Shown: positions 3,300 through 63,195, counted from the stretch's first letter. The stretch is 64,000 bases of DNA from Paragordius varius (GCA_964247055.1 OZ176050.1:6820001-6884000); one strand, 5' to 3'. Notes: generated by a model not told the origin, from the letters alone. Numbers and translations are program-made.

Positions 3300-5697
3300 T
3301 CAGGGATTGGATAAACTTTTATCCCGAGATTTGTATGGATAGCCACGACTCCTCAGTTCTCTAACAACTCCGTTTGGTAATTTTCCTGACACAGAAACAG
3401 CGTAGCATCCCTTAACCATTTTGTCTAAATAGTGATTTGATATTATATAATAATTAGTAAAATTATTAAGACAAAACGTAAAAATTAAAAGAATTATTTT
3501 TTAAAAAGACCGCCACACTTATGAATATAGTGTGTTACCAAATTAAATCTCTAGCCTAACGATAAGTTATAATAATTGAAGGTGATATATAATTGTCTTT
3601 AAAAATATTTGTCTTTTAATTTTCACCTTTTTTTCTTTTTAATTGCAATTTTTACGTATATAGTAATCCAATAGGAATGTTTAATTTCCAAATGATGATT
3701 TCAAAATATAATAAAGCGGATACAACAAAAAAAGTTGTTTGCTAAAAATTTAGATGAAATGACATTTTGGTCGCTATTATTTAAATAAGTATGCAGGCAC
3801 GGCTCAACTATGTTCGTTATTATAAATTTGAGAGGAAAAAATTATTTTCGGGGTTATTTTATAATAATTTTATAATCTTTACAACAAAAAATAAGAAGTT
3901 AAAGTATAAAACTATATATAACCTAAAATGATCATCTTAATTTGGTGTAACAAGAAGCATTTGATTAAGCCCAATATGAGAATAATGTAAAAAATTTAAA
4001 ATAAAGTTATTGTTTTCGGGTTATTAAACCAAGATATTGAGAAAGAATTACCTAATTTAGAGTATAAATATTTAAAATAATAAAAGTTTATCCAATGAAC
4101 AGATAGAGTTTTATAATTGTTTTTTTGAGTTAGTTAAACCATGTATGTTCAGCATAAATGCTGTAAATAATACTTTTACTTAATATTACACTTTTTTGAA
4201 AAAATGAGTGCTTAATTTAAGGTATATTTCTTTCAAAAATAAAATTCGCAAACAATAAAATGGTCACACATGCATATTTAAAATATATTTACCTAAACGT
4301 TGCCATTTCGCAACCCAGCTATCTTCAGGAGACGTCAACGCCATTAGTCTAAAAAATATATAAAAGGGGAAAATGTAATTTTATATACTATAACTAATTA
4401 TATTATTTTAAAAATTCAAGCGACTTTAAGGTTCAAAATATATAATAAATAATAAGTAATAATATTTATCCTTCTTTAGAATAGATAAATGAAACGCTGC
4501 AATCCAAAAATATTGTGTTTGAAACTATTTGATGGAGTTATGCCGATCAGTAATTAAATGAAATATTACACTATGGATTAAATTTATGGTTATGGGTAAA
4601 TAATAGTTGCTTTTACGTTTTAAGCTAAAATATAATAATATATGTTTAGTGTTACCTTTGACCATTTTTTACCGATATTTGAAATTAACTTTATTTATGT
4701 GTAGTAATCGGTTTATATTTTCAATTTAAATTTAGTATAATTTTCGTTTTATTAAATATTATCTAACGGTTTTATAGTTTACGAAAATAATGCCTTAAAA
4801 CTTTAATAAAGATTAAATAAAAATATAAGTAACAAGCGAAAGTTAAATAAATTTGTTATTTATAAAAATTGAAATACTATCATATTGATTTAACAAATAT
4901 AAATTAAAAACTTAAATATAATCTATATATATAATTTAATCAATAGGTTAACCAATATATCCGGATTCATGATGTCATTGGCGAAAAGGTTATATAACCT
5001 ATTTTTTAAACAAAACCTACTTTCATAAAAATATCAATTTTATCTCGTTACGCGTTCGTAAATGGCGGCTTTAAGCGGTTCGCGCAAAAATATTATTTTT
5101 TCCTATCTAAAACATGTTTTTGCATTGAAAATGTAACATGGAATGAAACCTAAATACTCGCATTATTCTAAAACATGTAATATGGACGCAATTCAGGCAA
5201 ATTATGAACTGCCAAAGGCAATAAACTTGATTAAGAACGAAAATCGGTACCAATTTTAATCCTTGGAGAAAATAAATTATGTCAAAAAATTAAAGAATTG
5301 CCGTAAAGACTGTGTAAACATAAACGTTAATGGCCCCAAGCGCTTTATTTGAATTTTTTAAAAAAAATCTAAAAATTAATTATTGTCTCATAGTTAAATA
5401 GTTAAGAACCTTATTCTTCTCCTATTTATTCGAAAATATATATAAGATATGGTGTATAGGTAGTATAACATACATCAATAAGCATATATTAATAATATTA
5501 CCCATCGAAATTGGCGCTGGTATAATCAAAAACAGCGTCCCTATTATTTTTCATATGCAAAATTGATTCACAGTTATCACATCCATCCATTTCGAATTGA
5601 TCAGTTGTCTTATTAAATTAAATTATACCTTTACAAGTGAGCATAGCAAGCAAGCTCTCAATTGTTTAAAATCTTTGGGTACTGTTTCAAGAGACAT
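3300..5697 (-). CDS. SUPT4H1: Transcription elongation factor SPT4 (DSIF small subunit), 118 aa; exons 5697-5629, 5608-5502, 4348-4293, 3424-3300
   Basis: The spliced product [23 protein letters not shown]|[36 protein letters not shown]|[18 protein letters not shown]|[41 protein letters not shown] has the SPT4 zinc-binding CxxC...CxxC and SWVxKWQR motifs. All junctions are GT-AG and in phase; the CDS is 357 nt. Confidence 0.96.
5609..5628 (-). other. 20-nt spliceosomal intron (SPT4 intron 1), GTATAATTTAATTTAATAAG
   Basis: Removing it joins LCSLVK to TTDQFE in frame; read-through hits TAA immediately. Confidence 0.93.
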
Positions 5698-9714: not shown

Positions 9715-11311
9715 TCTATATATTTATAAAAATGGAAAATGCTGGCTTTGGGACCGTTTCCGGAAAACCGGTACACCCAAATCCAAATATCGGAAAAATA
9801 TAATCATTAAATGCCCCGACAATAGCTTCGCCCTTTTTTGAATTAAGCCCACAGTTCGGGAACACCCCTTGTGAAAAACGGGTTTATTTTGAAATTTGAG
9901 ACAATTTTCCGAAAAACGTTGGACCATTCGATTTCAAATATGATTTACTTTTCGATTGTGCCAAACATAGTCGGCTCGCTTTCTTAATTTAGGCCCTCTT
10001 TTTACCCGCTCCCCCCGTAAAATGCCATTTTTTTCAAAGGAGAAGATTTTAACATAAATAATATAGAATTATAAAAAATACCTATTTTTAATTATGTTAA
10101 AATTTTCTCCGTCCACAAAAATAATTTTTTAAATCTATTTTTCGCCCAAGGTATGAGACTCAATTCAATGAGGAATCCAGGTATTCCCTTTAAATTGTAA
10201 AAATTTTAGTCGTTCGTTCTTTTATATTGGCTGCTGGGTTGGGAGATAACCGCTAAAAACTGTCCCGTCATATCGAAATAGCGTGCCTTTGGGGCCGAAT
10301 TTCAGAAAGCATATCAGGCCATATGAGTTCAATAGGTGCTTAAAATATTACCCGTAACAAGGCAAAAATTTAGGTCGCACAGTTTTTAAAATTAGCCGTT
10401 AATTAGGCCTTTTACGCCCTGAAAAATGCGCCGCCATAGAATGATGAGTTTTGAGGCAATTTTTCCAAAAACTAATGAGATATAAAGTCAATCATGATTT
10501 CAGGTATTCTCCGTAAAAAGGCAAAAATTTAAATCAAGCGCTTTTTTATCAGCCTCTGGGTAGGGCGCTACCCGCCTAAAACTGCGCCACCATATAGAAA
10601 TTGCGTTGTTTTGGAGCTAATTTACACAAATATGAAGCCATATAAGATTAAAAGCTTGATATATTACCCGTAACTAAATAAAAATTAAGGTCAGGCCTTT
10701 TTTTTATTAGCCGTTAATTTGGAGCCTTTATGCCCTAATACGTCATCATATAACGATGATTTAGTGTTGTGGCATTTTTTCGATAACCCATGAGACGACG
10801 GTCTCAAAGTGATTCCAAGTATTTGCCCTATAAAAGCAAAGAATTTAACTCAGTGCTTTTTTTATATGCGATTATGGGTAGGGGTCTACCGGTGTAAAAC
10901 TGAGAGGCCATATGTTTGGTTAGAGCTTCAAAAAACTTAAAAAACCAGAGGAGTTCAGTAAAACATTTCTAAGGAATTTGTATGATATCATTCTTTTTTT
11001 AAAAAGAGACCACAAGTTATTCACCTTTTATATCCCTTGATCCCAGCTGTGTAAACACAATTTCAAAATAAAACTTTTAACCATGATTTCGTAAAACGAA
11101 AATCTAAAAATAATTCCAATGATAGTTAAATATTAACTTTAATAACGGACAGTTTGAATATGAGCCTATGCAAAAACCTGTAAAAGAATAATTAAAGATT
11201 TTTATAAAATATGTTTTTTATTTTTTTTTATTTTATTACTTCTATATATTGTTTATTATAAATAATTATCGGTCAGACTACGTCACAGCGAAGCGTGACA
11301 GGGCCAGCTAG
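9715..11311 (+). mobile_element. Non-autonomous Helitron, about 1.6 kb, both ends intact
   Basis: 5' A|TCTATATATTTATAAAAATGG; 3' hairpin GTCACAGCGAAGCGTGAC followed by CTAG|T; internal degenerate subrepeats; no Rep/helicase ORF. Confidence 0.85.
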
Positions 11312-12296: not shown

Positions 12297-13454
12297 ATGT
12301 CTACCTCTGAAAAATGGTATGGTACCGAGGCTGGGAAAAGAACATTATCAAATTTTCTCCAATATGTTTGGGCCAAAGAATGTAAACCAGGTTCGGATAT
12401 TATAATTCATTTACCCAACGGAGGAAAATTTGAAGCACATCGTTTAATTTTAGCATGCAGCTCAAAATATTTTGAAAATCTATTGGCAATGGACGCAACA
12501 ATAAAAGATCATGATTTACATCCACAAACCGATCTTCCCGAATCCTATTGGGAGGATTCAGTCAGTCACAAGAAGGAACTTATATTAGGTCCACACACCC
12601 TGTTAAATATTGATTTATTTAAACACATTCTTAAATTCATGTATACTATGGAGATCGAAGTAACGCCTGAAACAGCTGACCGGTTTTGGGCCATAGGAGA
12701 AGTTCTCGGAATGCCACATCTTCAAAAGGTTTGTGTCGAAAAAGATAGTAAGTGCATGGAAAGAGGCCAAAAACTATTGGATACAGCCATCCCGGAAGAG
12801 CATAAGCATTGGGAGGCCCCCAAAAAAGTTTCCGATGCAGTAGGTGTCGAGCCCACTTCTTCGGTAACAAGTACAGCATCTACTGATACAGTGAAAGCTG
12901 TGCCTGAACCATCGCCTCCAAAAGAGGCCGCACTACCTGTTAAACCCCCTAGCCCAGTCAAACAACCAGAAATGGCACCACAAGCCAAACCTCCCAGTCC
13001 GACAAAACCGAGTGTCGAAGCACCTACGCCTGTTGCTCCAGCAGATGCTATTAAACCACCTAGTCCAGTTAAGCAGTCACTTTCTCCCGTGCCACCTGCT
13101 ACGGATAAGCCAATTACCCCAGAGCCACCCAAATCACCTGCTAAACTAAGCCCAGCCGAAGGGTCATCCACTGAAACAGCTACAACACCAGAACCTAGTG
13201 CAGCATCATCAGCAGAGGATACGACATCAGCAAGTGCAGATGAAAAGGACGATAAGAAAGATGACAAAAAAGGCAAAAAAGATGCCAAGGGGTCTGGCAA
13301 GTCGGAAGGCAAGGCCGGTGCCAAAAAAGGTGGTGAAAAAAAGAGTGAAGCAAAAAAATCGGACGGAAAAGAGAAAAAGGATAGTAGTAAAGCAAAGGCT
13401 AAAAAGGAAGATGGGAAAAAAGACTCAGCCAAAGGGGCCAAAAAGAAAAAATGA
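12297..13454 (+). CDS. Intronless BTB/POZ-domain protein with a Pro/Ser-rich middle and a Lys/Asp-rich C-terminal tail (385 aa)
   Basis: SDIIIHLPNGGKFEAHRLILACSSKYF and FKHILKFMYT...LGMPHL are BTB motifs. KPPSPxK repeats and a KKDDKKGKKD-type tail follow. Confidence 0.9.
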   Translation: MSTSEKWYGTEAGKRTLSNFLQYVWAKECKPGSDIIIHLPNGGKFEAHRLILACSSKYFENLLAMDATIKDHDLHPQTDLPESYWEDSVSHKKELILGPHTLLNIDLFKHILKFMYTMEIEVTPETADRFWAIGEVLGMPHLQKVCVEKDSKCMERGQKLLDTAIPEEHKHWEAPKKVSDAVGVEPTSSVTSTASTDTVKAVPEPSPPKEAALPVKPPSPVKQPEMAPQAKPPSPTKPSVEAPTPVAPADAIKPPSPVKQSLSPVPPATDKPITPEPPKSPAKLSPAEGSSTETATTPEPSAASSAEDTTSASADEKDDKKDDKKGKKDAKGSGKSEGKAGAKKGGEKKSEAKKSDGKEKKDSSKAKAKKEDGKKDSAKGAKKKK

Positions 13455-14948: not shown

Positions 14949-15963
14949 CTAGCGTAAATCTCGTGCTGCTATGCAGCCCGAGGAAGTCCTTTGGACTTTT
15001 TTTTTGGGGGGGGGGGCATTTTTGATTTTAAAAGCAATTTTAGTATGCGGCACGAAGTTTTAAAATGATTCACATAGTCTCATATTCTGATATTTGGCTC
15101 CAAAGGCAAGTTGTATCGATATGATGGCGCAGTTGTAGGCGGGTAGCCCCCTACCCAGAGGCCAATATAAAAATATGGTTAGATAAAAAAATTTGCCTTT
15201 ACCTGGAATAATCGTTCATTCCTAATAGTTTATGGAAGTATGGCTTCATAACTAAATAATAGTTCAATGATAGCGCATTTTTAGGGAGAGGGCCTATTTA
15301 ACGGCTAATTCAAAAAATCCGCTCGACTAAAATTTTTGACTTTTTACGGGTAATACTTTAAGCAACTATTGTACTCATACGGCCTGATAGGTTTTCTTAA
15401 ATTTAGCCCCAAAAGCACGCTATTTCAATATGACAGGTCAGTTTTTTGCGAGTAGCTCTTACTCAGCAGCTATCATCAAAGAAACGCTTGACTAAATTTT
15501 TTGACTTTAATCAGGGAATACGTGGAATCCATATTGAATTTTTACGGTCTCATACCTAGGGCGAAAAATAGATTTAAAAATTATATTTGTGGACTTTGTT
15601 TTTTGAAAAAATGGCATTTTACGGGGCGAGCGGGTAAAAAGAGGGCCTAAATTAAAAAAGCGAGACGACTATGTTCGGCGCAATCGAAAATAAGTAAACA
15701 AAAATCATATTAGAAATTGAATGATCCAACACGTTCTCCAGAAAATTGTCTCAAAGACACGATTTTTGTGGACTTCTGTTTTTAAAAAAAACCGTTTTTC
15801 ATACGGGGTGGGCCCGAACTGGAGGCCTATTTCAAAAAAAGGGCGAAGCTATTGCGGGGCATTCATTAATGATTATATTTTTTCGATGTTTGGATTTGAA
15901 TGGGTCTACCGCTTTTCCGGTACCAGATCACAAAGCCAGCATTTTCCATTTTTATAAATTAGA
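14949..15963 (-). mobile_element. Non-autonomous Helitron, about 1.0 kb, same 5' end as 9715 but a different 3' hairpin
   Basis: Minus-strand 5' TCTAATTTATAAAAATGGAAAATGCTGGC; 3' CTCGGGCTGCATAGCAGCACGAG...CTAG|T. Confidence 0.82.
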
Positions 15964-16158
15964 TGATAAAAATTTTAAAGGTTTTATTAACAATCGTATA
16001 ATCCTATATATATATATGCCGGAAAAGATGCTTTATAAAATTTTACGGAAAGCAAAAACGTATTGGTCAAAATGTTTTATAAAGACATTAGTTAATATAT
16101 TCGTAATCTATTGTCAGATACTAGTATAATTGCAGGTACAAGAGAATCTTTTATATTA

Positions 16159-16636
16159 TACCATTTGTACTTCTAGAGTGTCCTTGAACACTTAAAGTTG
16201 GTCCTTTAACTTTTTTGATTTGTTATTGGCTTTTATCAAACAAATCGTTTAACATTAATATATTTTATTATTTATAACCTATTCTCTTGATATTACCAAA
16301 TTTTTTAATCACTTTTGATCATTCAGAAACTATATATCGTTATTTAGTTTTAAAATTTCAATAAGATTTCAACATAATAGTTAGAAACAAATTGGGCTTT
16401 TAATCACATTAATTTTAATTGAAAAAATATCTTATAAATCTTGAAAATTAGGTTAAAAATTAATAAAATAAATAAATCCATGCAAAATTTATGGTCAAAT
16501 TCAAACTTATATATTTAAGGACCAACTTGAGAAATTTTGAAGGACCAATTTGAAGTGTTCAAGGACCAACTCGAAGTGTTCAATTGAAATATTCAAGGAT
16601 CAAATTGAGGTGTTCAGGACCTCTTGACAAATGGTA
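16159..16636. mobile_element. MITE with TACCATTT...AAATGGTA termini and inverted ~21-bp subterminal repeats (GGACCAACTTGAAGTGTTCAA-like)
   Basis: The inverted termini are visible; a close relative lies at 41705-42297. Confidence 0.65.
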
Positions 16637-16670
16637 TATAATGTTCATGCTCTATGAACGCACTATTGTT

Positions 16671-17898
16671 ACACTGTGTGCAAAGAGAGTCATTTTGATT
16701 TAACGAAAAATTCTTTTTTTCATGTTTATGACCAGCATATTCATTTGCCGCAAATTTTTTTATTTGTTGACAACCTAGTTTTTGAAATATTGAGAGAAAA
16801 TCGAAATCGGGCAAAAAGTGAAAATTAAGGATAATTATGGATAATTTAAAAAATAATGATAAAATCTAAAATATTATCGTTTATTATTATTTTAGGTTTC
16901 AATATATAAATAGCCTAAAATCATATAATTAGGGTTTCTTTAAAATATTAAGTCATAAGATGGCGTTTTTATTTTATTACACTTAAAAGACAAAAAAAAA
17001 TTTAGTGAAACTATATTAAAATAATTTTTTTTAATTATTTACTACCTGGACTCACTATTAAAATCTTAACATTCATATTTTATTCAGGAAAATAAACTTC
17101 TATATCAAAATAAAATCAAAAATATTGTTTTTTATTTTTGCATTTTGTCATCTGGTTTATGAGTGTATAAAAAATTCTGTTTTATTTTGGATTCTTACAT
17201 GATTAGGCATTATTAAGTATATAATTTATGCAAAATAGGATTTAAAAGTAGTGTAATATCAACCAACAATCCGTACAAATCCCAATTAATTTGTCATAAA
17301 ACAGACTTGTTACAGAAAATTCTAAGGATTGTTGGTTGATATTCCACTGCATAAATTATATACTTAATAATGCCTAATCATGTAAGAATCCAAAATAAAA
17401 CAGTATAAATTTTTTATACACTCATAAACCAGATAACAAAAAAATGCAAAAATAAAAAACAATATTTTTGATTTTATTTTGATATAGAAGTTTATTTTCC
17501 TGAATAAAATATGAATGTTAAGATTTTAATAGTGGTGTGGGTAATAAATAATTAAAAAAAATTATTTTAATATAGTTTCATTAAATATTTTTGCCTTATA
17601 CGTGTAATAAAAGAAAAACGCCATCTTTTGACCTGAAAATTTTAAAGAACTCTAATTATATGATTTTAGGCTATTTATATATTGAAAATATCTCCTAAAA
17701 TATTAATAAACGATAATATTTCAGATTTTATCATTATTTTTTGAATTATTCTTAATTTTCACTTTTTGCCAGATTTCGATTTTCTCTCAATATTTGAACT
17801 AGGTTGTCCACAAATAAAAAATGCGGCAAATGAATACGCTGGTCATAAGCTATCTCATGAAAAAAAATTTTTTTTAAAATTTTTTTTGCACACAGTGT
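16671..17898. mobile_element. Foldback element: ~600-bp inverted arms around a ~50-bp centre
   Basis: ACACTGTGTGCAAA...TTTGCACACAGTGT termini. The arms can be paired by eye along their length, to the centre at about 17275-17325. Confidence 0.8.
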
Positions 17899-18153
17899 TA
17901 TAGATATTTATAATCTATTATTAAATTTATAAACTGATAGTTTTAGTTTATGCGTTATCACTTTTATATAATTGCAGATCCTCGACAAAATAAAAAAATA
18001 TTATTTTATTTTGGTATATAAAATCACCCCAAGTAAATTAGGACAAAAAAATGAAAAGGTAATGAAATTATTTCATCTGTAAAATTATAACTAACTGTGG
18101 TTTATGGTTAGGAGTATTTTTATGCAATAAATTTCTTTAGAACGAATAAAAAG

Positions 18154-18226
18154 TGTTTCTGCCCGGGATCGAACCGGGGACCTTGTGCGTGTGAAGCACA
18201 CGTGATAACCACTACACTACAGAAAC
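18154..18226 (-). tRNA. tRNA-Val (anticodon CAC)
   Basis: GTTTCTGTAGTGTAGTGGTTATCACGTGTGCTTCACACGCACAAGGTCCCCGGTTCGATCCCGGGCAGAAACA: 73 nt, full cloverleaf, anticodon stem TGTGC/GCACA, GTTCGA T-loop, followed by a T-run terminator. Confidence 0.96.
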
Positions 18227-18265
18227 ATCAGTTTAACGTTCTAAAAAAACTTTTTATATACTACA

Positions 18266-18978
18266 ATGGATTTTAATTGCAAAGATGCTTTTGACCTAAT
18301 TAAAGATTTGGAGAGTGATGAGCTTAAGCCCTTTGATGTAATTAACTATTAATATTTTAGGAAGAAAAAATTAAAAAAATATATGATCAAATGATGGTTT
18401 TGTACAGAGCGAATCAGATTGATGCGTATATATTTATTTAATTTTTGTGAAACTTCGATTAATGAAATAGCGCACTACACAACGATATTAGCAAGACATT
18501 CTGCCTTAGAAAGAAATAAACGATGTTTATTAAATTATATGTATATTTGTCCGTAATTTAAAGTTATTTTCGGCTTCAAAAAATTCAGCATGCCCGCTGG
18601 GATTATGGATTTGTTTTGCCTAATATAATTCTCCAAAATATGAGTGATACCGAAGTTATTATGCATATAAATCCAGGTAAATTGGTATAAAAGTTACAAT
18701 CAACTCATAAACACGCTTTTATCAGATTCGGGATTTACCGAACTTGGATCCGATATGATTTTTTCGAAAATACCCCCTAAATCGTCACTAATAAAAGTTT
18801 TCTTTATTACAACCGATAGGTTCGCTGCCTTAAAGATTTCGATTATGAAAAAGATGATGGAGAAATTATTAGTTTCAAAACTCATTCTCAAGTTTTTATA
18901 AATTTATTTTAGCATTTCCTACCTCGATCAATTTGTCAACAATTTATCAACCAAGGATTTTTACAACACATATATTAA
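18266..18978 (+). CDS. GINS1: DNA replication GINS complex subunit PSF1, 192 aa; exons 18266-18337, 18361-18425, 18448-18540, 18564-18654, 18677-18796, 18820-18891, 18913-18978
   Basis: The spliced product MDFNCKDAFDLIKDLESDELKPFD|EEKIKKIYDQMMVLYRANQIDA|ETSINEIAHYTTILARHSALERNKRCLLNYI|YFRLQKIQHARWDYGFVLPNIILQNMSDTE|VNWYKSYNQLINTLLSDSGFTELGSDMIFSKIPPKSSLIK|VRCLKDFDYEKDDGEIISFKTHSQ|HFLPRSICQQFINQGFLQHIY* carries the PSF1 motifs RNKRC, RWxYG, PPKS, VRCLKD and SQHFLPR. It needs six introns of 23, 22, 23, 22, 23 and 21 nt. Confidence 0.95.
18338..18360 (+). other. 23-nt intron (GINS1 intron 1), GTAATTAACTATTAATATTTTAG
   Basis: GT-AG, phase 0; retention gives an in-frame TAA. Confidence 0.92.
18426..18447 (+). 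other. 22-nt intron with non-canonical GT..TG ends (GINS1 intron 2), GTATATATTTATTTAATTTTTG
   Basis: This is the only boundary that keeps the TILARH helix in frame. The AG at 18469-18470 shifts the frame. It may be a one-base assembly error. Confidence 0.65.
18541..18563 (+). other. 23-nt intron (GINS1 intron 3), GTATATTTGTCCGTAATTTAAAG
   Basis: GT-AG, phase 2; joins RCLLNY to YFRLQKI in frame. Confidence 0.92.
18655..18676 (+). other. 22-nt intron (GINS1 intron 4), GTTATTATGCATATAAATCCAG
   Basis: GT-AG, phase 0; joins MSDTE to VNWYKSY. Confidence 0.9.
18797..18819 (+). other. 23-nt intron (GINS1 intron 5), GTTTTCTTTATTACAACCGATAG
   Basis: GT-AG, phase 0; joins PPKSSLIK to VRCLKD. Confidence 0.92.
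18892..18912 (+). other. 21-nt intron (GINS1 intron 6), GTTTTTATAAATTTATTTTAG
   Basis: GT-AG, phase 0; joins HSQ to HFLPR. The length is 3n, but the terminal TAG is an in-frame stop if retained. Confidence 0.92.
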
Positions 18979-19472
18979 AAATAATTTATTATGTTTATAA
19001 TTATAAAAGAGGAAAATAATAAAAATAAATTTAAGTTTTGATTTGATGCATTATTACAATTATCATGTTCATCACAAATACAATAGTAAATATGGCGTTT
19101 TGAAATTGATTGCGTTATAAACGGGTCTCCTGGTCTTATTAATTTTTGCGTCGCATTTTTGCATCCCCTATAGGGATTTGTAGGAAAAATATCTTTATAA
19201 GCCAATTTCACTGTTTGAAGACATCCTCTATGATATGTAATTTGAGCTAAAAAATTAGAAAAATATAAACCATTTTCGGCATCAATAACTTTTACACATT
19301 GATCATTTTCTTCGCATTTTTGTGAAGGACAAAGTTCCCATTTAAAATTATGCCCTGAACCAGGATACGGTGATGAACACGTATAGCATGATATTTGTAG
19401 TGAACAATTAACTTTCGTATAGAAAAATAGAGTACACCAAATGCACCACCTCAGAAAATTTGAATTTGACAT
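18975..19472 (-). CDS. Secreted or GPI-anchored Ly6/uPAR (three-finger, quiver-like) protein; probable 24-nt intron at 19247-19270
   Basis: N-terminal hydrophobic signal, CYTC start, spaced cysteines (CP..KC...QCVK, RGC, CIC...CN) and a hydrophobic C-terminal tail after NAS. Confidence 0.8.
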   Translation of the reverse strand: MSNSNFLRWCIWCTLFFYTKVNCSLQISCYTCSSPYPGSGHNFKWELCPSQKCEENDQCVKVIDAENGLYFSNFLAQITYHRGCLQTVKLAYKDIFPTNPYRGCKNATQKLIRPGDPFITQSISKRHIYYCICDEHDNCNNASNQNLNLFLLFSSFIIINIINYF

Positions 19473-20581
19473 TTTTGTATGTATGAAAATAACACCATTT
19501 TTTAAATCTACCAGTATGTTTAAAATCTGGATGTTTAAAAATATATTTTGTCAAAATATATAATCTGATAGGTAAATGTTGTTTGAAATCGAGAGAGCTT
19601 ATGGTTTTGGGCCTTACACAGTTTTAAAAAATTTATTATTTTTAGTAACTGCCCTATATTAAAAAATCGCAAAATTTACTCACAATATGATAAATGTATT
19701 ATTGGGAAACCTAAAAGCATGTCAAAAATACCCTTAAACCTTTGTTACTTTTTGGGGTAGTATTGTAGGCAAGAGCTTTAATTCCATTTAACACCCCAGA
19801 TAATATTTAAGTTAATATTTTTGAAAATGGGCCCGATTTAAAAAAAACTTCTTTAATCATTATTAGCATGATTCAATTTTCTTTTATTTGTGTAAAACTT
19901 CAAAATTTTTCACCGCAATATTTAGTTTTATATTAACACTTGGTTACAACAAATTCTTCAGTCCTTCGATATAAATTGGAGTAGGTAGATACTCCGGGCT
20001 TGTTTAAAATTAAATATGGAATCAATTGAAACCATGGCTAAATTTTCGCATAACATTGAAAACACTAATATAAGAAATATTCATTAAAAAATACTTGATA
20101 TCACTTATTCAGACGTCAAACCCAAAGATAATAATTTAGCCAACATGACATGTGTGCCTAATACAAAAATAATGCAAAATTTACCACTTTTACTGTTTAA
20201 TTTTAAATGTGATTTTAATAAAAAATAAACATATTTTAGGCTTAGAATAAAAACACGGCAAATATGTAGGAAAACAAAAATGGCGCCGAAGTAGTTTAAT
20301 ACAGAAGTTTTTATCAATAGATTTTATTTAGATATTTTGGCTAATTAATATATTTTTTATTAGGATAGAAGCATAATTTAAATGAAAACCGTTTCTTTCA
20401 GGATTTTTTTAAAAATATCAACATAAATATTTTCTGGGGTATTTGGATACGCCAATTTGAATTAAAGTATTAAGGATTCCTTACTTATTTTCGATCATTG
20501 TATTTGGGGGTATTAGAATTGATAAGCTGCTGTGTTGAAGGTTGAAGATATAATTAACTATATTTCTTTTCATTGTATATA

Positions 20582-21700
20582 CACAGTGTCCAAATCGAGG
20601 GTCATGAAAAATATCTTGATGTATTAAATATGTTTTGATAAAAAAAAATCAGGAATTGATGGTCCTTTTGGTTTTGGGCTACAAGTGTTTTAAGAAAGTT
20701 ATCAAAACTTTTGCGTCGTGTCTATATCAGAAAATAGCGAAGTTTGCGCACAATTTTTATTAAAATTTTTTTGGTGAAAGCTAAATGCTTCAATCCAAAA
20801 AACCTATAAAAAGCAAATTTTTTAAAAAAAAATTTGATGTGGGCTCCGAAAGTCCCAATTTTTTTCGCTCTTAAAAATGGCCTAGATTTCTAAAATAAAA
20901 CGCAAAACTGCAGAGCTTGCGCGATAAAAATTTTATATATATGCTAAATTTTGATATCGACTAAAAATATTAGAGAAATTCATACTTCAAAAATTTATTT
21001 TTTATTTGAAGCATACTATATACTATTTTGAAGCATTATGGAAGAGGTATAAAATCGCTTTAAGACATTATTGAAACACTTTATATAATTTGAGGACGCT
21101 AAACCTTTCACCTCAGAATTTCAATTGAAACATTCGTTTGACTTTAAGATTATGTGAAATCAAATTTGGGTTTTTTATCCAAAAATGCACCAAAATTTTA
21201 AAGCAAACGAATTATTGATCTGTGAAAATTGTTTTTATGATGTCTTAAAACGTTTTTATACCGTTTCCATAATGCCTCAAAATAGTAAAAATTACGTAAT
21301 AAAACAAAAATTAAATTTTTGAAAAAAAGTAAATATTTTTGAAAAAATATTTTTTGTTTATTTAAAATTTTTATCGCGCAATCTCTGCATTTTTGTGCTT
21401 TAAGGAAAACTAGTTCTTTTAGAAGGCGAAAAAATTGGGACTTTCGGAGCCCACATCAAAAAAAATTATTTTTTAAAATATGTTTTGGTTTCTATAGGTA
21501 GCTTATGATAAATTTTAGTGATATATTTTGGAAAGAAGCATTAAGCTTTTGTCCAAAAAGATTATCACAAAAATATGCCAAAATTTGACCATTTTCTGAT
21601 ATGGGGCGCCTGCCACAAAAGTGTAAATAACTTTCTTAAAACACTTAGAAGCCCACAACCAAAAGCACCAAGAGATTCCAGATACATTTTTCTATCGATA
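20582..21700. mobile_element. Diverged foldback/MITE with long inverted arms
   Basis: For example, GATGTGGGCTCCGAAAGTCCCAATTTT (~20835) pairs with AAAATTGGGACTTTCGGAGCCCACATC (~21430). Related fragments lie near 6650-6900 and 11850-12015. Confidence 0.65.
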
Positions 21701-23687: not shown

Positions 23688-26600
23688 ATGCAATATTATG
23701 TTAATATATGCTTCCCATTTTTATCATGGATTATCTTCCTAATTATCAATCCGATACCTTTATGCAAAATTTTGATATGTTGGGCTCAGTACTGTGACTC
23801 ACAAAGTAATATAATATATATAAAATTAACCAAAAAGTTTATCTAAAAGTTTTATTTAAGAATATTGGCAACTCAAAATTTTAATTATTAATGTTATATG
23901 GTACGATACGTTAAGATTGTGTTTAGCGAAATTTCCGTGCGTCAGCCTGTATTTTTGTTTTATTATTATAATGTACAAGCCATTAATATGAATTTAGATG
24001 AAAATGTAAATGGTAAAATTTAAATAAAATTGATAAAGGAGACACGGTAGTTTGCAAACCGTTATTGTAAATAAATTTTTTTATTATTTCTGATAAAGTA
24101 ATTCTATATATATATTAAGTAGTATCCTAATATCTGGAATATACCATTCCTTTTAAGTTACACATATTTCAATTAATATTCTCCATATTAAATCTGCAAA
24201 TAGCACCAATCGAAATAACAAGCATATCTTGTGACTGCCCAAATGGTTTTTATTCCGTTTATACCCCATCGGGGGCTGGTCCGTTTCGCATTTACCTGAT
24301 TGGGGATGAGAATGGCGAAGTTAAAGCAAAGTTAGGTAGATCGGGAGCATGGAACTTTGAACAAAATACACCCTTTGCAAAATTAGCGGCTCAATTTTTG
24401 TCCCAAACAGAACTAAATTTTGTGGCAGCTTTACAAGATCCAGTAATTGACATTGTCACAGATATTAATTTCAGAATAGCTCATGAATACGGGACAAATC
24501 CATCCTATTTAACTGTAAGGTTGGTGAAATTTTTCTTATTTTCAACTCTATTTTTTTTAAATGTATTTACTGAAAAAATTACATGATTTCAAACTCGTTA
24601 TTATCAATAATATTTCCCCTCATATTTTTGTTGTTATATTATTTTGTTCAAATAAATATTGTCGAATAAGGACATGCATAATATAATTTCAGGGGCACAT
24701 GGCCAGCATAGTTTCAACTGAGAATGGAATTAATAGTATTTTGGCTTCGGTTCAAAATTAATTATTATGATTTTGATTTCGCCATTATTACGGTTCCAAA
24801 GAATAGTCAATAATATTGCTCTGGTTCCATTGTGTTTTATCAATAATTCCATATTTTAATAAAATTGTAGATAACCAAATATTTTGATGCAACTTGAATG
24901 AAATCCAATAATACAAATCAAAGTTTTTTAAAACTCAAATTTAATGTAAAAAACCACGGTTTTATTTTTCCAATATATTCGAATTTTCGACATACTATTT
25001 AAATAAAAATATTTTTTTTTCGTTTGGCCATTTATTAACATTGAACTCAAAATTGCTATATCGAATCTACAACAAATAGAAATTAGAAAACAATAGACCC
25101 TTTTGCAAAAGATGCTGGGATTGAAGCCACACCCTATTTTGCACAACCGTTTTTATAATTTTGTGGAACTAAAACCAAAAACCGCTCCGGCTGCAATCCT
25201 TAATTTACTCTTAATAAAGATCCCAAAGTGGGTTTGACGAAATATCTCCCTGATATTCCTTTTTTTAGATTATATACTAATTTCTTAAATTAAAAAATAA
25301 ATAATTTTTTTGTCAAAAGTAATGATTAGCGCATCAATACTGATGTTCAGATTTGTTGAATCCATTGGACAGGTTCAACTACGAAATATTACTAATTGGC
25401 ACACTGGTGTTTCTGCAATTATTTTTAAGAAATTAAAATATCTTGTAATTTAGCATAATAAGTTGATCTGATATTTTTACATCATTAAACATTAATCTAA
25501 ACCACGGGGTTCAACATGCGCCATTTGCTAGCTGTGAAAAATTCGGAAATAAAATTGATATCTCTCAAACAAATTTCATGAATACGTCTTGTCAACGAAC
25601 TAGCAATAATGTTTGTTGCGTTAGCTTTTTACAGTACTAGGTTTAAAATTTAAGCAGATAATATATATATATATATATTTCGAATGCGGCCCACGATGTT
25701 GTTGGACATCCGTGGTCTAAACATTTAAAAAACATCATACGCTTCAATAGTCAACATTGCTTTGCTTTTTATTTTTCAACAATTTTTTGTTATTTCCCGC
25801 TATATTTACATAAATCCTAAATATATCAATATATATAGGTATCTTGAAGATTTATCAATCCCGTCCACTATATGCATGACGCACGGAAATGTTGGAGGAT
25901 ATCAAAACACTAATCTACTCTACAGGCCATCACGATCAATAATAGAATACGAAGAAGAGCAATTTGGCTATAACCCGTTTCATTCAAGAGGAACACGACC
26001 TTATCGCCCGCATAGAAGGCCTGGACAACCTTATGGTCCTCACAGAAGACCTCCAAATCCTTTTTGGCGAACAAATATTCTACCAGCCGGACAAACTGGT
26101 TACAATCCCTATGGTAATGTTATCAATCCATATGGTGCTAATAATATCGGCCAACAATCAACTTCTCTCGTGTTTGATGGTAGGAGTCAGGTAATATGTA
26201 AATCTCAGACCTCGGTATCACCGACTTCTTATACACCTTATGGGGGTAATGCAAGATCCGGAATTTGCGGTAAATGTGGAACACCCTACGCTGGACAATC
26301 TTCACCAGATTTTTTGCTCGAATCCGTAGATTTAGGGACAGTAAATGGGAATTGGTTTATATTTACTGGCTCTTACTACTATGTCTATGTAACCATCAAG
26401 AATTGTGTAAAATATTATATACAAGTTCTTTTGTGCATCAATACATGCAAAATTAATTTTCCCATAAACGGTTTTAATACGTTTTTTTCCTTGTCATTAG
26501 GCTAAATCTCCATCCCAGCCTTCAAACTCGTATCAAACCCAAATCCCTGGTTCGGTCCCAAATGAGGGTGGTGGTAGCGAGATTAGACCAGGCGGCTTCC

Positions 26601-29600: not shown

Positions 29601-32600
29601 ATAACCTATCGTTAATGTCTAATAAATAGGATATCCTTATAATTTTACTGGAAGTTAAAACATATTTTATATATAAAAAATATATTTCAAGTTTATATTT
29701 AATAATGGAACTTGTCACACTATAAAAAATTGATATGATAAACTAAATTACAGTAAAAACTGAAATTATACACTGAAAACGTAAAAATATAAAGACAAAT
29801 ATTTTTTTATAAAAGACAACCATAGTTTTTTAATCTTGTTTAATATAACTGATGGTTTTAAACTGAATTCATGAAATTGATATGTAAATCGGTGAAACAA
29901 TCAATTATATATTTAACAATTCTAGTTAAATAATTTATATGAAAAAAATTCAGGTTTAATAAAAAGTATGATTGTCTTTTGAAAAAAATATTTGTCTTTT
30001 TATTTTTACGTTTTGTCCGTATAATTTCAATTTTTACTGTATATTAGGTTGGGTTTTGAAAAGATTATTTCATATTTGCAACAAATGAGTGAGTGTGTTA
30101 ATTTTTTTATTGAATAATTATTCGGATGAAAAGAATAAATTTAATTTAATGTAATACGGATGTTAAACTACGAGATCAATCGTTACTAATTAAAATTTTT
30201 GTTTTACAAATGAATCTTTATAATGTATAAATGTCTTCTTTAGGTTGTGGAGTTCCCAAAACACCTGATACCCGAAAACGCCGTCAAATAGGTTTGTACC
30301 CATTTTTTATCAGTAATGCAAGTGTCACCAAATAGTATTATATATCGATACCATTTACACCTCAAATTCTCCATTAGACATTTCAAAACCTTTAATCTTA
30401 AAAAACCCTGAATGAAAATTATAAGTTTTTGGAGTAATCTAACTCATTATTTATATAAAATATTTCATTTTTTTCTCTATTATGCCAATTTTAACCAAAG
30501 TTATATTATTTAAAAATATCAAAAACATTAGTAATTTTTGATTTCCAAGAACAGTTAATATATTTTAGGGGAATTTAAATATTGGAGGGTTAATATGAAA
30601 TTAACAAGAGTTATTTGAAATGTTCATAAATGAGTTCAAAATGTTTGAGGTGAATTAGGAGGGTGATTTGAGAGTTTTAGTGTGAAACTGAGTTACAAAT
30701 GGTAATTTTGGAAAATATAGAATATGGCTACAATGAATTTTCGCGAATGAAATCATCAAATAAAATTTCCACGAGAGTACCATTGTTGCCGAAAAATACG
30801 ACAGTAGATCAAGCTAGAATTCTGTATGGTGTCCCATCTAAAAGAGGTTCTTGGCCTTGGCAGGCAAGTATTCGACATAAAGGCATTCATTTATGTGGTG
30901 GATCCCTTGTGTCTGATAAATACGTAATTACTGCCGCACATTGTCAATTTGGAAGAAGGTATAAAACAATATTTGTTTTGTTTAAAGAGTATTGATTTAA
31001 ATTATGATTTATATATGATTTGTGTTTTATTATATATATTCCAAAAATTTTAATTTAAAACAATACTATTTTAATATATTAGAGTAAGTCTAATATTTGA
31101 ATAAAAGCTGAATATATTGGTAGCTTTGCTAACATTGTGAAATAGAAGCTATTTACATACCGCCTATCATTCTATTGCAAATTTATTATAAATAATTAGT
31201 ATTACCATGTATTTTCAAATTTAATTTTTTTGATATAGAAATCCGTCAGACGTTACCCTGAGTTTTGGAACATTATTTTCTGGTGGGGTTACCGATGAAT
31301 CGGAGCAGACAAGACGAGCTGTGCGAATTATAGAACATGAGAATTTTAACCAAGGTATAAATATGCATAGCGATATAATTTATTAGAGGTAAAATCAAAC
31401 TTATTCTATGATAAATAATATTTTTATTCAAATATTGTAAATTGTTTTGATTCCTTGAAAATTTTAATTGCAACCGTCGCCCTAAAAACATTATAAGTAT
31501 TCAAGGCTACTCTATAGTAGTCTGATTGGCTATGAAGGAATCGAAACCATGTCTGTGATCGCATTCAAAAATAACTGGTCAAAAATGCTTCAATACATGT
31601 TTATTATATAATGCAAACTAAATATAATGGTGAAAGTGTTTGATACAAATGTTAGATTTTTGAATATAACATTTAAAATGTCATTTATCAAAAGTTATTT
31701 ACCGCTACAAGCGATTTAATTGGCTAAATTCGTTTTTTTTAAATTTTTGAATAAAAAGTATAATAGTGTTTATCATTCTGAAGGACTGCATGGCAGTCAG
31801 ATTGTTTATTTTAACATTCTTTCGGGAATTGTACAGTTTATGTAAAAGATATTATACTATAATTTGGATTAAATAACCCCTTAATTGATTGACCCTTTTG
31901 AAATAATAATTATTTTGTGAATACTTAACATTCAGATATAATAAATATTAATTCCATTTATTAATTTTATTTATATTCGCTTTATAAACTTTGTGAAAAT
32001 TATCATTATTTGAATTTTTAATATCCATTTTGATTAGGTCTTAAATTTAATAATGATATTGCCATAATTGAACTGGACTCACCAGTACAGTTTACCGACT
32101 ATGTTTCCCCGATTTGTTTGCCCAATTCTGAGTATACACCTTCAATGCTGTGCTATGTTACTGGATACGGATCTACAAAAGGTTTTCTAAAAATATAATG
32201 TGTCTATATGTTTAGGGAAAAATGTATTTACTTTTGTATATTTTACTTTGAGAATAGCAAGAAATTTTTAAGGACAATTTTAAGCTTATAAAAATAAATC
32301 AAAACCATTTGGCGCCAAGTATATCCTTAACTATTTCCATGTAAATTTTTGAAAATATAAGATATGGGGAAGAAAGCACGTATAATACATGATAATTTTG
32401 AGGCTAGATTATCCATTAAGAAAAATTTTCATATGTACAGAACTACAAAAGTTTCTTGACAAATATAAATAATTAGGCACCGGTGTGGAGAATGTGTTAA
32501 ATGAGGTCGCGTTACCTATAATAACTAAATCACAATGTTTGGACCCTAACTGGTTAGGAGACAAAGTTAATGATAATATGATATGTGCCGGAGGTGGAGA

Positions 32601-33217
32601 AAAAGATTCTTGTCAAGTATGTTTGAAATTAAGAGTTTTATATTTAATTTTTTAAAGTCAATTCATGGTTAACTGTGTTAAATTTAAAAAAATACTTTAT
32701 ATTTTTTGTTAAGCCATTCTATTTGGGTTTTACCAGTTATAGACGCATTCACTCTGTTTGCTTACAATAGTACATTGAAATTAATATAAAATATTGATAT
32801 TAAACCTAAATTAGGTATAATAAAAGTGTGAAATTTTTGAATTTTATAAATCTTCATTATTAAATATTAATATATATTAGCACATATTTTAATAAAACAC
32901 AAAAAAACTATGATTCTATCCCTTATCGCAAAAATGACTACTCTGATATTAGCAATACACATAGTATGGGACTTTAAATTTGCTATAATTTTAAGTCAAA
33001 ATCTTTGTAATGAATGTAATATTTTATTTTATTTCTAAATTTAATCAAGGGGGACAGCGGTGGACCATTTCAATGTTTGGATGAATCTCAGGGCAATGTT
33101 TGGACCTTGACTGGCATAGTTTCTTGGGGTATTGATTGTGGAAAAGTCAACAAACCAGGTGTATATACCAATGTTTATCTCTACTTGGATTGGATTCAAC
33201 AAAGAATACCATTATAA
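23688..33217 (+). CDS. Multidomain trypsin-like (S1A) serine protease A, about 808 aa, 15 exons
   Basis: Exons 23688-23805, 24204-24519, 25839-26406, 26501-26807, 26960-27010, 27804-27842, 27921-27962, 28448-28516, 29335-29397, 30244-30291, 30721-30958, 31239-31354, 32038-32181, 32477-32616 and 33050-33217 are all phase-compatible (2427 nt). Features: hydrophobic N-terminus, activation site R|ILYG, TAAHC, NDIA, DSCQGDSGGP (intact triad, Asp in the S1 pocket). Confidence 0.9.
30349..30704. mobile_element. TACCATTT-family MITE in a protease A intron
   Basis: TACCATTT...AAATGGTA termini; ends 16 nt before the exon at 30721. Confidence 0.5.
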
Positions 33218-36900: not shown

Positions 36901-37507
36901 TGTTTCAATATTGTAATGATGTTATGCCAGCCAAAAATTTATTCTGTGCCTTGATCAAAAAAAACATTCCCTTTAAAAAGTAATCATAAAAAATTTTTTC
37001 CACAATATTTATATCACTTTATTTGGGCTTTTAGAGTATCATAAATATAATAATTTTAACATTAGGTCTCTTACACGTTTCACAACTCGGGGTCCAAGAA
37101 TTTGTTCGATTCTACTCATTTTTAAGCATTTATATAAACACGAATTGCTGCCTAAACATTTTACATTTACTATGCATATCGATATTTAATTGGAACTTTG
37201 TAAACTCAGGAATAATCTATACTGTAAGAAAATTTTTTTAAAAAATAAAATACGCATATAAATTAAGAGTAATTTTTTTAGATACCACAGCAGAATAAGT
37301 AAAGTATATTAGAAACTCCCTGTAGGTCGCTGGTATTAATAAAACTTATTTAACTTTGTGCCCAAAAAAACTTCGCAATCAACGACTCACCCTAACTTTA
37401 CATATTCAAACGAAATTTATTTTTATTGATCGTCTGGTCTTAACTGTATTATCATAAACCTCACAACATTTCATTTAAAATATAACTTATAATATATTTT
37501 TATGCAG

Positions 37508-44695
<7,188 letters not shown>

Positions 44696-46838: not shown

Positions 46839-49800
46839 TCTACATATTTATAGAAATGGAAGGTGGTGGCTTTTTGATCTGTTTCCGGAAAACCGGTAGA
46901 CCCAAAATCCAAATCAAAAAAATATAATCATTAATGAATGCCCCGACAATAGCTTCGCCCTTTTTTGAATTAGGTCCCCAGTTCGGGTCCACCCCGTGTA
47001 AAAAACGGGTTTTTTTGAAAACAAGTCCACAAAAATCGTGTCTTTGAGACAATTTTCCCGAAAACGTGTTAAACCATTCGATTTCAAATAAGATTTTTTT
47101 TACTTATTTTTGATTGCTCGTTTTACCCGCTACCCCCGTAAAATGCCATTTTTTTCAAAAAACAAAGTCCACAAAAATAATTTTTTGATTCTATTTTTCG
47201 CCCAAGGTATGAGACAGTAAAATTATAATAAGGATTTTAAGTTTTGTTAAAAGGCAAAAATTTTAGTTAAGCGTTTCATTAATGATAACTGCTGGGTAAG
47301 GAGCTACCCGCAAAAAACTGACCTGTCATATCGAAATAGCGTGCTTTTGGGGCTAAATTTCGGAAATATCAAGCCATATGAGTTCTTTAGCTGCTCAAAG
47401 TATTACCTGTAAAAAGTTAAAAATTTAAGTCGAGCGGATTTTTCAAAATTAGCCATTAATTAGGCCCTTTACGCCCTGAAAAATGCGCCACCATAGAATA
47501 ATTTTTTAATTTTGAGGCAATTTTTCTGAAAACCGATGAGAGATATGGAATCAATCATGATTCCAGGTATTCTCCGTAAAAAGGCAAAATTTTAATCAAG
47601 CGCTTTTTTGTATCAGCCTCTGAGGAGCTACCCACCTACAACTGCGCCACCAAATCATAATTGCGTTGTTTAGGATTTAATTTTCAGAAAACTTATCAGG
47701 ATATATAAGTTTTCTAAGGGCCCGAAATATTACCCGTAAAAAGACAAAAATTGAAGTCAAGCGGTTTTTTAAGTTAGCGGGTAAATAGGCCCTTTCCTAA
47801 AAATGCGCTATCATTGAACCATTATTTAGTTTTGAAGACATTATTCCATAAACTATTAACCGCATATGGAATGAATGATTCCAGGTATTCCCATATAAAG
47901 GCAAAAAATATCGAATGTCTTTTTTATTAGGGAGCTACCCGCCTAAAACTGCGTCACCATATCTGCGTTGTTTAGGAGTTAAAAATCACGCCATATAAGT
48001 TTTATAAGAACCTGAAATTTTACCCATAAAAAGGCCACAAGCGGATTTTTTAAATTAGCGGTTAAATAGGCTCATGGTAGGGGGCTACCCGCGTAAAAAT
48101 TCATCACTATATCGATACAGCATGACTTTGGAGCCAAATTTAGAAAATTTTTGAGACTATATATGTGAGTTCAACAAGGGCCTTTATTACCCCTAAAACA
48201 AATATTTTAGTATAGGGCATTATTTCAATGAGTCGCTTGGAAAAGTTTTATGTTCTGAAATTCCGCCATAGAACAATTTTTTTTTGAGGCAATATTTCCA
48301 AGAATAGGAACATATCGACATTATAATATCAGATATTCCCTATATAAAGACAAAAACTTTGCCCGGCGCCTATTATACCTGCCTCTGGGTAAGAAGCTAC
48401 CCGCCAAAAACTGTTTACATCGAAATTGCGTTGTTTTGGAACTAATTTAAAACTTATGCCATATGAGCTCATTTAAAGTTCGAAATATTACCCGTAACTA
48501 GGTAAAAATTAAAGTCATGCCTTTTTTATTGGCCGTCAATTTGGGGCCTTTACACCCGTAAACAATATATTAGTAAGAATGCACCGTTTTGATGAGATCA
48601 TAGCTATTAAATAATGTTTCGAAAGAATCCACATATATGGATCATTTTATTTATCCCTTTTTTCAAATAGCCCCCCCCCCCCCCCACAAGTTGTTTGAAA
48701 CGCTTTATTTAATATTATTAATCTATATATTTATAAAAATGGAAAATGCTGGCTTTGTGATCTGGTACAGGAAAACCGGTAGACCCAATCAAATCCAAAT
48801 ATCGAAAAAATATAATCATTAATAAATGTCCCGACAATAGCTTCGCCCTTTTTTTGAAATAGGCCCCCAGTTCGGGCCCACCCCGTATGAAAAACGGGTT
48901 TTTTTGAAAACAGAAGTCCACGAAATCGTGTTTTTGAGACAATTTTCCGGAGAACGTGTTGTACCATTCAATTTCAAATATAATTTTTGTTTACTTATTT
49001 TCGATTGCGCCGAACATAGTCGAGCCACTTTTTTGATTTAGGCCCTCTTTTTACCCGCTCCCCCCGTAAAATGCCATTTTTTTCAAAAAACAAAGTCCAC
49101 AAAAATAATTTTCTAAATCGATTTTTCGCCCTCGGTATGAAACCGTAAAAATTCAATACAGATTCCACGTATTCCCTGTTAAAAGGCAAAAATTTTAGTC
49201 CACCGTTTATTTGATGATAGCTGCTGGGTAAGGAGCTACCCGCTAAAAACTGATTTTTCATATAACTTTGTGAACTGTTTCCGGAAAACCGGTGATCCCA
49301 ATCAAATCCAAATATCGAAAAAATATAATCATTAATGAATGCCCCGACAATAGCTTCGCCCTTTTTTGGAATTAGGTCCCCAGTTTGAACCCACCCCGTG
49401 TGAAAAATGGGTCAAGTCAATTTTTTGGAGAACGTGTTGGACCATTCATTTCAAATATGATTTTTGTTTACTTATTTTCGATTGCGCCGAACATAGTCGA
49501 GTCACTTTTTTGATTTAGGCCCTCTTTTTACCCGCTCCCCCCGTAAAATGCCATTTTTTCAAAAAAAAAACAAAGTCCACAGAAATATTTTTTTGATTGT
49601 ATTTTTTTGCCCACGGTATGAGACTGTAAAAATTCGAGAAAGATTTTTCATATTGCCTGTTAAAAGAGGCAAAAATTTTAGTCAGGCGTTTCTTTGATGA
49701 TAGCTGCTGAGTAAGGAGTATCTATCATATGTATAGCATGTTAAAAGATATATGGATGTTAAAACATTATTTATGGTAATCTATATATTTATAAAAATGG

Positions 49801-62220: not shown

Positions 62221-63195
62221 AATGTTTTAATATCCATATATCTTTTAACATGCTATACATATGATAGATACTCCTTACCCAGCAGCTATCATCAAAGAAA
62301 CGCCTGACTAAAATTTTTGCCTTTTAACAGGGAATACGTGGAATCTTTATTGAATTTTTACGGTCTCATACCTTGCGCGAAAAATCGATTCAGAAAATTA
62401 TTTTTGTGGACTTTGTTTTTTTTGAAAAAAATGGCATTTTACGGGGGTAGCGGGTAAAAAGAGGGCCTAAATCAAAAAAGTAACTCGACTATGTTCGGCG
62501 CAATCGAAAATAAGTAAACAAAAATCATATTTGAAATTGAATGGTCCAACACGTTCTCCGGAAAATTGTCTCAAAAACACGATTTTGTGGACTTCTGTTT
62601 TCAAAAAAAAACCGTTTTTCATACGGGGTGGGCCCGAACTGGGGGCCTATTCAAAAAAAGGGCGAAGCTATTGTCGGGACATTTATTAATGATTATATTT
62701 TTTCGATATTTGGATTTGATTGGGTCTACCGGTTTTCCTGTACCAGATAACAAAGCCAGCATTTTCCATTTTTATAAATATATAGATTACCATAAATAAT
62801 GTATTAATATCCATCTATCTTTTAACATGCTATGCATATGATAGATACTCCTTACTCAGCATCTATCATCAAAGAAACGCTAGACTAAAATTTTTGCCTT
62901 TTAACAGGCAATACGAAAAATCTTTCTCGAATTTTTACAGTCTCTTACCGTGGGCAAAAAAATACAATCAAAAAAATATTTTTGTGGACTTTGTTTTTTT
63001 TAAAAAATGGCATTTTACGGGGGTAGCGGGTAAAAAGAGGGCCTAAATCAAAAAAGTGACTCGACTATGTTCAGCGCGATCAAAAATAAGTAAACAAAAT
63101 TCATATTTGAAATTGAATGGTCCAACACGTTCTCCAAAAGGTTTTCCTGTACCAGATCACAAAGCCAGCATTTTCCATTTTTATAAATATATAGA
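62221..63195 (-). mobile_element. Tandem pair of non-autonomous Helitron units (5' ends at 63195 and 62786)
   Basis: Reverse-complement near-copies of units in 48722-49779, including the same junction tail. Confidence 0.8.

Follow-up and report, generated by a model that had tools for sequence, protein, structure and literature searches.

Ultra-short spliceosomal introns have been described in two lineages of parasitic animals. In dicyemids, which are parasitic bilaterians with repeat-rich genomes and a conserved exon/intron structure, the median intron length is 26-27 nt (Ogino et al. 2010; Lu et al. 2019, PMC6736024; Zverkov et al. 2019, PMC6543705). In the myxobolids Thelohanellus kitauei, Myxobolus rasmusseni and Henneguya salminicola, medians of 22-27 bp were published in September 2026, the median being 22 bp in both T. 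kitauei and M. rasmusseni (Hadjez et al., MBE 2026, PMC13644364). The same study described 'GTa...AG' signals and, in myxobolids and Dicyema, weakly conserved A residues that lie further from the AG the longer the intron is; the genome of H. salminicola has a GC content of 29.1% and is without mtDNA (PMC13644364). That of M. rasmusseni consists of 68% repeats and is assembled in 1,078 contigs, with a mitochondrial genome about twice the normal size that carries five canonical genes.

Introns shorter than 30 nt were until recently believed to be absent from animals. Tiny introns are also found in Paramecium (about 25 nt), in Stentor (15-16 nt) and in the chlorarachniophyte nucleomorph of Bigelowiella (18-21 nt).

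In the window analysed here (the whole 64-kb stretch of DNA, AT-rich with 28% GC, and repeat-rich), positions 18266-18978 on the plus strand are predicted to hold an intact, single-copy and functional PSF1/GINS1 gene with six spliceosomal micro-introns of 21-23 nt that would be removed from the pre-mRNA, a reading to which we assign a probability of about 0.85. PSF1/GINS1 is a subunit of the CMG replicative helicase.

With the myxobolid introns, those of the window share an animal setting, a modal length of about 22 nt, reduced 'GTa'/AG signals and, as predicted here, spliceosomal removal. In both, weakly conserved A residues keep a roughly constant spacing from the 5' end, longer introns coexist in the same genomes, and the short ones are found between conserved exons. 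The differences are that a single gene here can combine micro-introns with adjoining introns of about 1 kb, that one intron would need a TG acceptor, and that the Ly6/QVR-type neighbour and the highly conserved SPT4 and UBTD genes are not myxozoan-looking; in addition, the evidence in myxobolids includes Iso-Seq, whereas the introns here are predicted from DNA sequence. Dicyemid introns are slightly longer, and the genome of Dicyema japonicum has a GC content of 36.7%, compared with 28% here. Ciliates and nucleomorphs belong to the same length class, and in both cases a U2-type spliceosome working on substrates of about 20 nt would be implied, but those are non-animal systems in which nearly all introns are tiny, whereas the length distribution here is at least bimodal.

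The sequence-only reading from which this analysis started had placed introns of this size far below the usual animal minimum. The lengths of 21-23 nt in GINS1 stand, but the novelty was overstated, as introns below 30 nt have been published for dicyemids, which that reading itself cited, and for myxobolids (PMC13644364). Ultra-short spliceosomal introns in parasitic animals are already known; GINS1 adds a case to them, and possibly a novelty at the level of the phylum.

Gene model and identity of GINS1

Removal of segments of 23, 22, 23, 22, 23 and 21 nt from 18266-18978 yields a 579-nt open reading frame from ATG to TAA, which encodes 192 aa within a genomic span of 713 nt, and all seven exons are without stops and without frameshifts (Table 1). 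In human numbering, the introns are located at 25|26, within or after codon 47, within codon 80, at 110|111, at 149|150 and at 174|175. The sequence-only reading suggested that they may coincide with the vertebrate GINS1 intron positions, in which case they would be ancestral introns that have shrunk. Successive PSF1 pieces are spread over the three forward frames, and none of these is open throughout 18266-18978. The six cuts, the 192-aa product and the lengths of 579 and 713 nt proposed by the sequence-only reading were thus all reproduced. Its further statement that every frame of the unspliced region stops within about 30 codons holds only in that no frame is open across the gene; the longest stop-free run is 76 codons (18671-18898). 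As that reading had foreseen, the gene escaped ORF finding, which returned no long ORF in 18266-18978.

Table 1. Exons and micro-introns of GINS1, and micro-introns of SPT4 and the UBTD1/2-like gene, in the window
Feature	Position	Strand	Details
GINS1 exon 1	18266-18337	+	ATG; 24 codons; collinear with the human PSF1 N-terminus (taken as a lead)
GINS1 micro-intron 1	18338-18360	+	23 nt, GT..AG, phase 0; GC 13%; TTAAT, A at position 15
GINS1 exon 2	18361-18425	+	'MMVLYRANQID' compared with human 'MKALYEQNQSD' (taken as a lead)
GINS1 micro-intron 2	18426-18447	+	22 nt, GT..TG (non-canonical 3' end), phase 2
GINS1 exon 3	18448-18540	+	Best PDB match Drosophila Psf1 (6raw_H) 68-84, E 0.029
GINS1 micro-intron 3	18541-18563	+	23 nt, GT..AG, phase 2; splits codon AT|T (Ile77)
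GINS1 exon 4	18564-18654	+	Best PDB matches human PSF1 81-107, E 0.008
GINS1 micro-intron 4	18655-18676	+	22 nt, GT..AG, phase 0
GINS1 exon 5	18677-18796	+	Aligned to human 111-149 (taken as a lead), score 49
GINS1 micro-intron 5	18797-18819	+	23 nt, GT..AG, phase 0; 24 nt in the X3 haplotype
GINS1 exon 6	18820-18891	+	Drosophila Psf1 157-181 (E 0.07); human PSF1 150-174 (E 0.42)
GINS1 micro-intron 6	18892-18912	+	21 nt, GT..AG, phase 0; in frame, ends in TAG
GINS1 exon 7 and TAA stop	18913-18978	+	Human PSF1 175-194, E 0.004; Pfam PSF1_C E 0.0098
SPT4 micro-intron 1	5609-5628	-	20 nt, GT..AG; exactly between human residues 23|24
UBTD1/2-like micro-intron 1	53985-54007	+	23 nt, GT..AG; joins the MGCC... 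first exon to the UBTD2-matching exon

For the identity of the product, each exon was searched singly against all PDB chains, as exon pieces and not as a joined protein. PSF1 was the best match, or the sole family among the best matches, for four of the seven exons (3, 4, 6 and 7), and these pieces matched animal chains, not those of yeast. The single-exon matches to PSF1 chains reached just 14-20 bits with weak E-values (0.004-0.07) that are convincing only jointly; they are collinear, and the junctions at 80|81 and 174|175 abut without gap or overlap. In Pfam, only exon 7 gave a match among the single exons, a weak one to PSF1_C (PF24997, positions 33-52 of 54, 15.9 bits), which stays below the cut-off of 27 bits because one piece offers only 20 of the 54 positions. 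Exons 1, 2 and 5 had no match of their own in the PDB at E-values up to 10, because they are too short and divergent. As one joined piece, exons 1-3 could be aligned over their full length with human PSF1 1-80, at a score reached by none of 2000 shuffles, and the same number of shuffles never reached the score of exon 5. These two alignments are taken as leads; three other segments of the human protein used for them agree with PDB sequences.

Exons 3 and 4 are collinear with known PSF1 in the N-terminal alpha-helical A-domain of GINS, and the C-terminal B-domain (PSF1_C) is divided between exon 6 (human 150-174) and exon 7 (human 175-194). Both domains are therefore present, as in human and Drosophila PSF1 (PDB 2E9X, 2Q9Q, 6XTX, and 6RAW chain H), with which the product is collinear and similar in length (192 compared with 196 aa), although divergent in sequence. 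The collinearity with PSF1 claimed beforehand was borne out by the order and the abutment of exons 3, 4, 6 and 7. Judged from these alignments, the exon-wise agreement is far beyond chance, and 18266-18978 is apparently a complete and functional-looking GINS1/PSF1 gene of animal type.

Predicted micro-introns in other genes, their signals and the putative TG acceptor of intron 2

Micro-introns were also found in two further genes of the window. The SPT4 gene (3300-5697, minus strand) has four exons separated by introns of 20, 1153 and 868 nt. Its exon 1 (5629-5697) corresponds to human SPT4 1-23 (E 1.3e-7) and exon 2 covers residues 24-59, of which 31-59 were aligned to that same human chain (E 2.8e-8). 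A micro-intron and kilobase introns are predicted to lie within one transcript. In the UBTD1/2-like gene (53927-55320, plus strand), exon 2 matches human UBTD2 (2ksn_A) with an E-value of 1.7e-23, and an intron of about 0.8 kb follows downstream of the 23-nt intron. Over the matched stretches, identity to the human proteins is about 70-80% for both SPT4 and UBTD. Intron 1 of the UBTD1/2-like gene (GTTATATTTTATTTAATTTTAAG) is nearly identical to intron 2 of GINS1 (GTATATATTTATTTAATTTTTG).

Altogether, eight introns below 30 nt (20-23 nt) lie between conserved exons of GINS1, SPT4 and UBTD, with junctions set by protein alignments. The micro-intron class is thus predicted to extend beyond GINS1 and to coexist with introns of about 0.1-1.2 kb, at times in one gene. 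A window-wide count of ORF-joining GT..AG segments of 15-60 nt, compared with a reversed control, showed no peak at 20-25 nt; this flat histogram says little, because the window is gene-poor and repeat-rich. A micro-intron gene finder based on dynamic programming was discarded as unspecific, the reversed sequence giving equally many long 'genes'.

The GINS1 introns have 19% GC and 50% T, compared with 31% GC in the exons, where GC1>GC2>GC3. All eight micro-introns start with GT at positions 1-2, followed by A or T at position 3; position 15 is an A in all eight, position 16 an A in six and position 12 a T in seven. Their sense strand contains 50% T and 6% C, and the 3' end lies 5-8 nt beyond A15, around which a TTAAT-like motif is found. 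The rule for A15 was drawn post hoc from eight introns. This motif looks like a putative branch site whose spacing from the 5' splice site is fixed, and together with the T-richness it would be a spliceosomal trait.

While all six GINS1 introns start with GT, five end in AG and intron 2 is the exception (GT..TG). There is no AG between 18418 and 18468, and the DNA contig from run X3 has the same TG. Several other cuts were rejected. With a 45-nt GT..AG intron (18426-18470), translation would run into a stop 16 codons further on. An intron of 16 nt (GT..AG, 18402-18417) restores the frame but loses the conserved LYxxNQxD ('LYRANQID'), with a PSF1 score of 80 compared with 105 in the alignment taken as a lead. 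Shifting the 22-nt cut by -2, -1 or +2 nt makes the ends less canonical, and +2 also creates a stop; a shift of +1 nt (TA..GT) gives the same protein and was dropped for its ends alone. On the alignment to PSF1, the only homology-consistent cut is predicted to be the 22-nt one, in its most canonical form GT..TG.

TG is a rare 3' splice site of U2-type introns that has been reported in human genes. There, TG acceptors are mostly alternative sites near an AG, whereas the TG of intron 2 would be the sole productive acceptor. A scanning spliceosome would get to the AG at 18469-70 and produce an unproductive mRNA. Either the 3' site of intron 2 would be set by distance, tolerating TG, or splicing at this intron would be inefficient or unproductive.

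The sequence-only reading proposed that the spliceosome may use intron definition on substrates of about 20 nt. The mechanism proposed here is that a U2-type spliceosome would treat each micro-intron as a single unit: the branch site would be set by how far it lies from the 5' splice site (A at 15), and the 3' site would be chosen a short fixed distance past the branch site (5-8 nt), normally at an AG. Intron 2 could then use TG without an available AG because its 3' site would be fixed by distance.

Competing explanations and wider bearing

Among the alternatives, the most probable one is that a myxobolid myxozoan or a dicyemid is the source of the window, which would then show a phenomenon already described; we consider this unlikely. 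The median of 22 bp in T. kitauei and M. rasmusseni fits the lengths found here, the 28% GC of the window is close to the 29.1% of H. salminicola, and the repeat-rich window resembles the 68% repeats of M. rasmusseni. Against a dicyemid stands the higher GC content of D. japonicum, and against a myxozoan the identity of SPT4 and UBTD to human, which would be unexpected in such fast-evolving genomes. Against both stands a neighbouring ORF that resembles QVR/Ly6, a family dominated by arthropods and nematodes (a likeness in language-model features, to which Pfam added no confirmation). The window contains no marker gene, and no evidence on the taxon favours dicyemids.

The DNA of the locus was compared with runs X3 and X4, which are DNA from two samples of one study. 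Depth was even over the GINS1 exons, introns and neighbours (about 343 and 88, respectively), as for a single-copy gene. A 1051-nt contig of X3 covering 18166-19215 confirms every GINS1 intron boundary, including the TG; relative to the window it has six substitutions and one indel, and it therefore represents another haplotype. The sole indel lies inside intron 5, where a G has been added after 18800. Five substitutions fall in GINS1: 18475 (H55Q, third position), 18502, 18511 and 18564 (synonymous), and 18632 (L100R, which gives the human PSF1 residue); 18564 T>C, seen in run X4, lies in the Ile77 codon split by intron 3. The list of differences is complete for X3 and covers part of those in X4. 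Third positions of the spliced frame take four of the five substitutions, with the exons in different genomic frames (binomial p about 0.045), a polymorphism pattern that is consistent with constraint; on the other side, two of the five are non-synonymous. One run with another organism label contains this genome at about 5x, and its sister run of that label contains none, which would look like the pattern expected of a parasite in a host sample.

These data bear on the explanation that the locus is a decaying pseudogene, i.e. a former GINS1 copy with six small insertions or a lost splice site, with the working copy elsewhere. The intron without AG would agree with decay, and none of the gene was present in the RNA-labelled runs of the same species label (including X11). 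Decay is nevertheless quite improbable in view of the intact exons, the single-copy depth and the substitutions favouring third codon positions, with the lone indel being intronic. Every interruption is GT-initiated, 21-23 nt long and T-rich, the junctions abut exactly on the PSF1 alignment, and SPT4 and UBTD have the same architecture.

A removal or skipping that is not spliceosomal, such as elimination from the DNA as in ciliates, or bypassing during translation, is still less probable. The segments resemble in size the smallest eliminated sequences of Paramecium, but their ends are GT...AG and not TA...TA, and the branch-point-like motif and the T-richness speak for splicing. Moreover, the DNA contigs of three runs carry the micro-intron segments at full depth, and no deleted form is among those listed. 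That the contig is contamination from a micro-intron protist (a ciliate or a nucleomorph-bearing alga) is scarcely credible, since the likeness in intron size to Paramecium and chlorarachniophyte nucleomorphs is outweighed by an animal-type UBTD2, SPT4, two trypsin-family proteases and a Ly6-like gene on the same 64-kb contig, by TAA serving as a stop, by PSF1 pieces that match animal and not yeast chains, and by a depth continuous with the neighbours; the sequence-only reading had likewise seen an animal-like genome, and the genes on this contig agree with it.

The window belongs to an animal genome that is probably that of a parasite and, judged by GC content, repeat load and the parasite-like distribution over runs, probably that of a nematomorph. 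Hairworms may be the third independent animal lineage, and the first ecdysozoan one, in which a discrete class of 20-25-nt introns is mixed with kilobase introns in the same genes, a tentative suggestion that we hold at somewhat less than even odds. The full-text literature that was covered, to which Cunha et al. 2023 (the main hairworm genome paper) did not belong, held no paper linking hairworms with short introns, and the Gordionus genome paper makes no mention of introns. The assembly of Gordionus montsenyensis has 26.9% GC, 63.8% repeats, five pseudochromosomes, a 15,085-bp mitogenome and 71.6% BUSCO completeness.

By default, the usual gene predictors and aligners probably exclude or penalise introns this small. 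If they do, and if the suggestion is true, conserved genes like GINS1 would be broken or missed in annotation and in BUSCO, and an annotation artefact would account for some of the 'rampant loss of universal metazoan genes' published for hairworms and for the BUSCO value of about 72%. Genes like GINS1 escape ORF finders and probably default gene prediction too, and claims of gene loss for such genomes would therefore need to be re-examined. With two parasitic animal lineages documented, a further one would show that animals have repeatedly arrived at the smallest size of spliceosomal substrate. The present one would be of particular value if a single transcript has both micro-introns and kilobase introns spliced out, and it would offer a natural system for asking how one spliceosome serves both regimes. 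A ruler-like mechanism makes two concrete and testable predictions here, the fixed A at +15 and the TG acceptor.

Genomic surroundings of GINS1

A tRNA-Val(CAC) gene (18153-18226, minus strand, Rfam 66 bits) ends 39 nt upstream of the GINS1 ATG, and the promoter and 5' UTR of GINS1 are therefore predicted to overlap or abut a Pol III gene. At the gathering threshold, Rfam gave only tRNA in the window and no snRNA. On the other side, a single-exon ORF of 165 aa (18975-19472, minus strand) begins like a signal peptide and has a hydrophobic tail; its ten cysteines end in CxC...CN. The ORF was assigned to Ly6/uPAR (QVR-like) by Atlas language-model features (0.94); Pfam did not confirm QVR, and a homologue search was empty. 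The stop of this ORF overlaps that of GINS1 by 2 nt, and the two are therefore convergent genes with predicted overlapping 3' UTRs.

The gene island of tRNA, GINS1 and Ly6-like gene is flanked by very high-copy repeats, and the k-mer depth over 15621-18020 and 19800-21600 was 10^3 to 10^4 times single-copy in three DNA runs. One repeat occurs on both strands in many copies (9727-9933, 15721-16126, 46843-47103, 48721-49411 and 62471-63256); its translation contains 'GFPVPDHKASIFHFYKYIDY' and 'SQSQHFPFL', and it is part of the high-copy repeat load.

Further genes were found in the window. A single-exon BTB/POZ protein of 385 aa (12297-13454, plus strand, Pfam E 3.6e-14) has a long P/S/K-rich low-complexity tail, and no homologues of it were found at E<=1e-5 in a collection of 5.8 billion proteins. 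A duplicated ORF pair (24131-26502 and 37486-38558, both plus strand) encodes in each copy a 'CDCPNGFY...GPFRIY' module, a Pro/Arg-rich stretch and then 'CGKCGTPY...FTGSYYYV[YH]VTIK'; it had no family match and is probably a lineage-specific family of secreted proteins. Two paralogous trypsin-family (S1) protease genes (30681-33214 and 42416-44692, both plus strand) gave Pfam Trypsin E-values of 1e-12 to 1e-15 per exon, and their introns are roughly 0.1-1 kb long.
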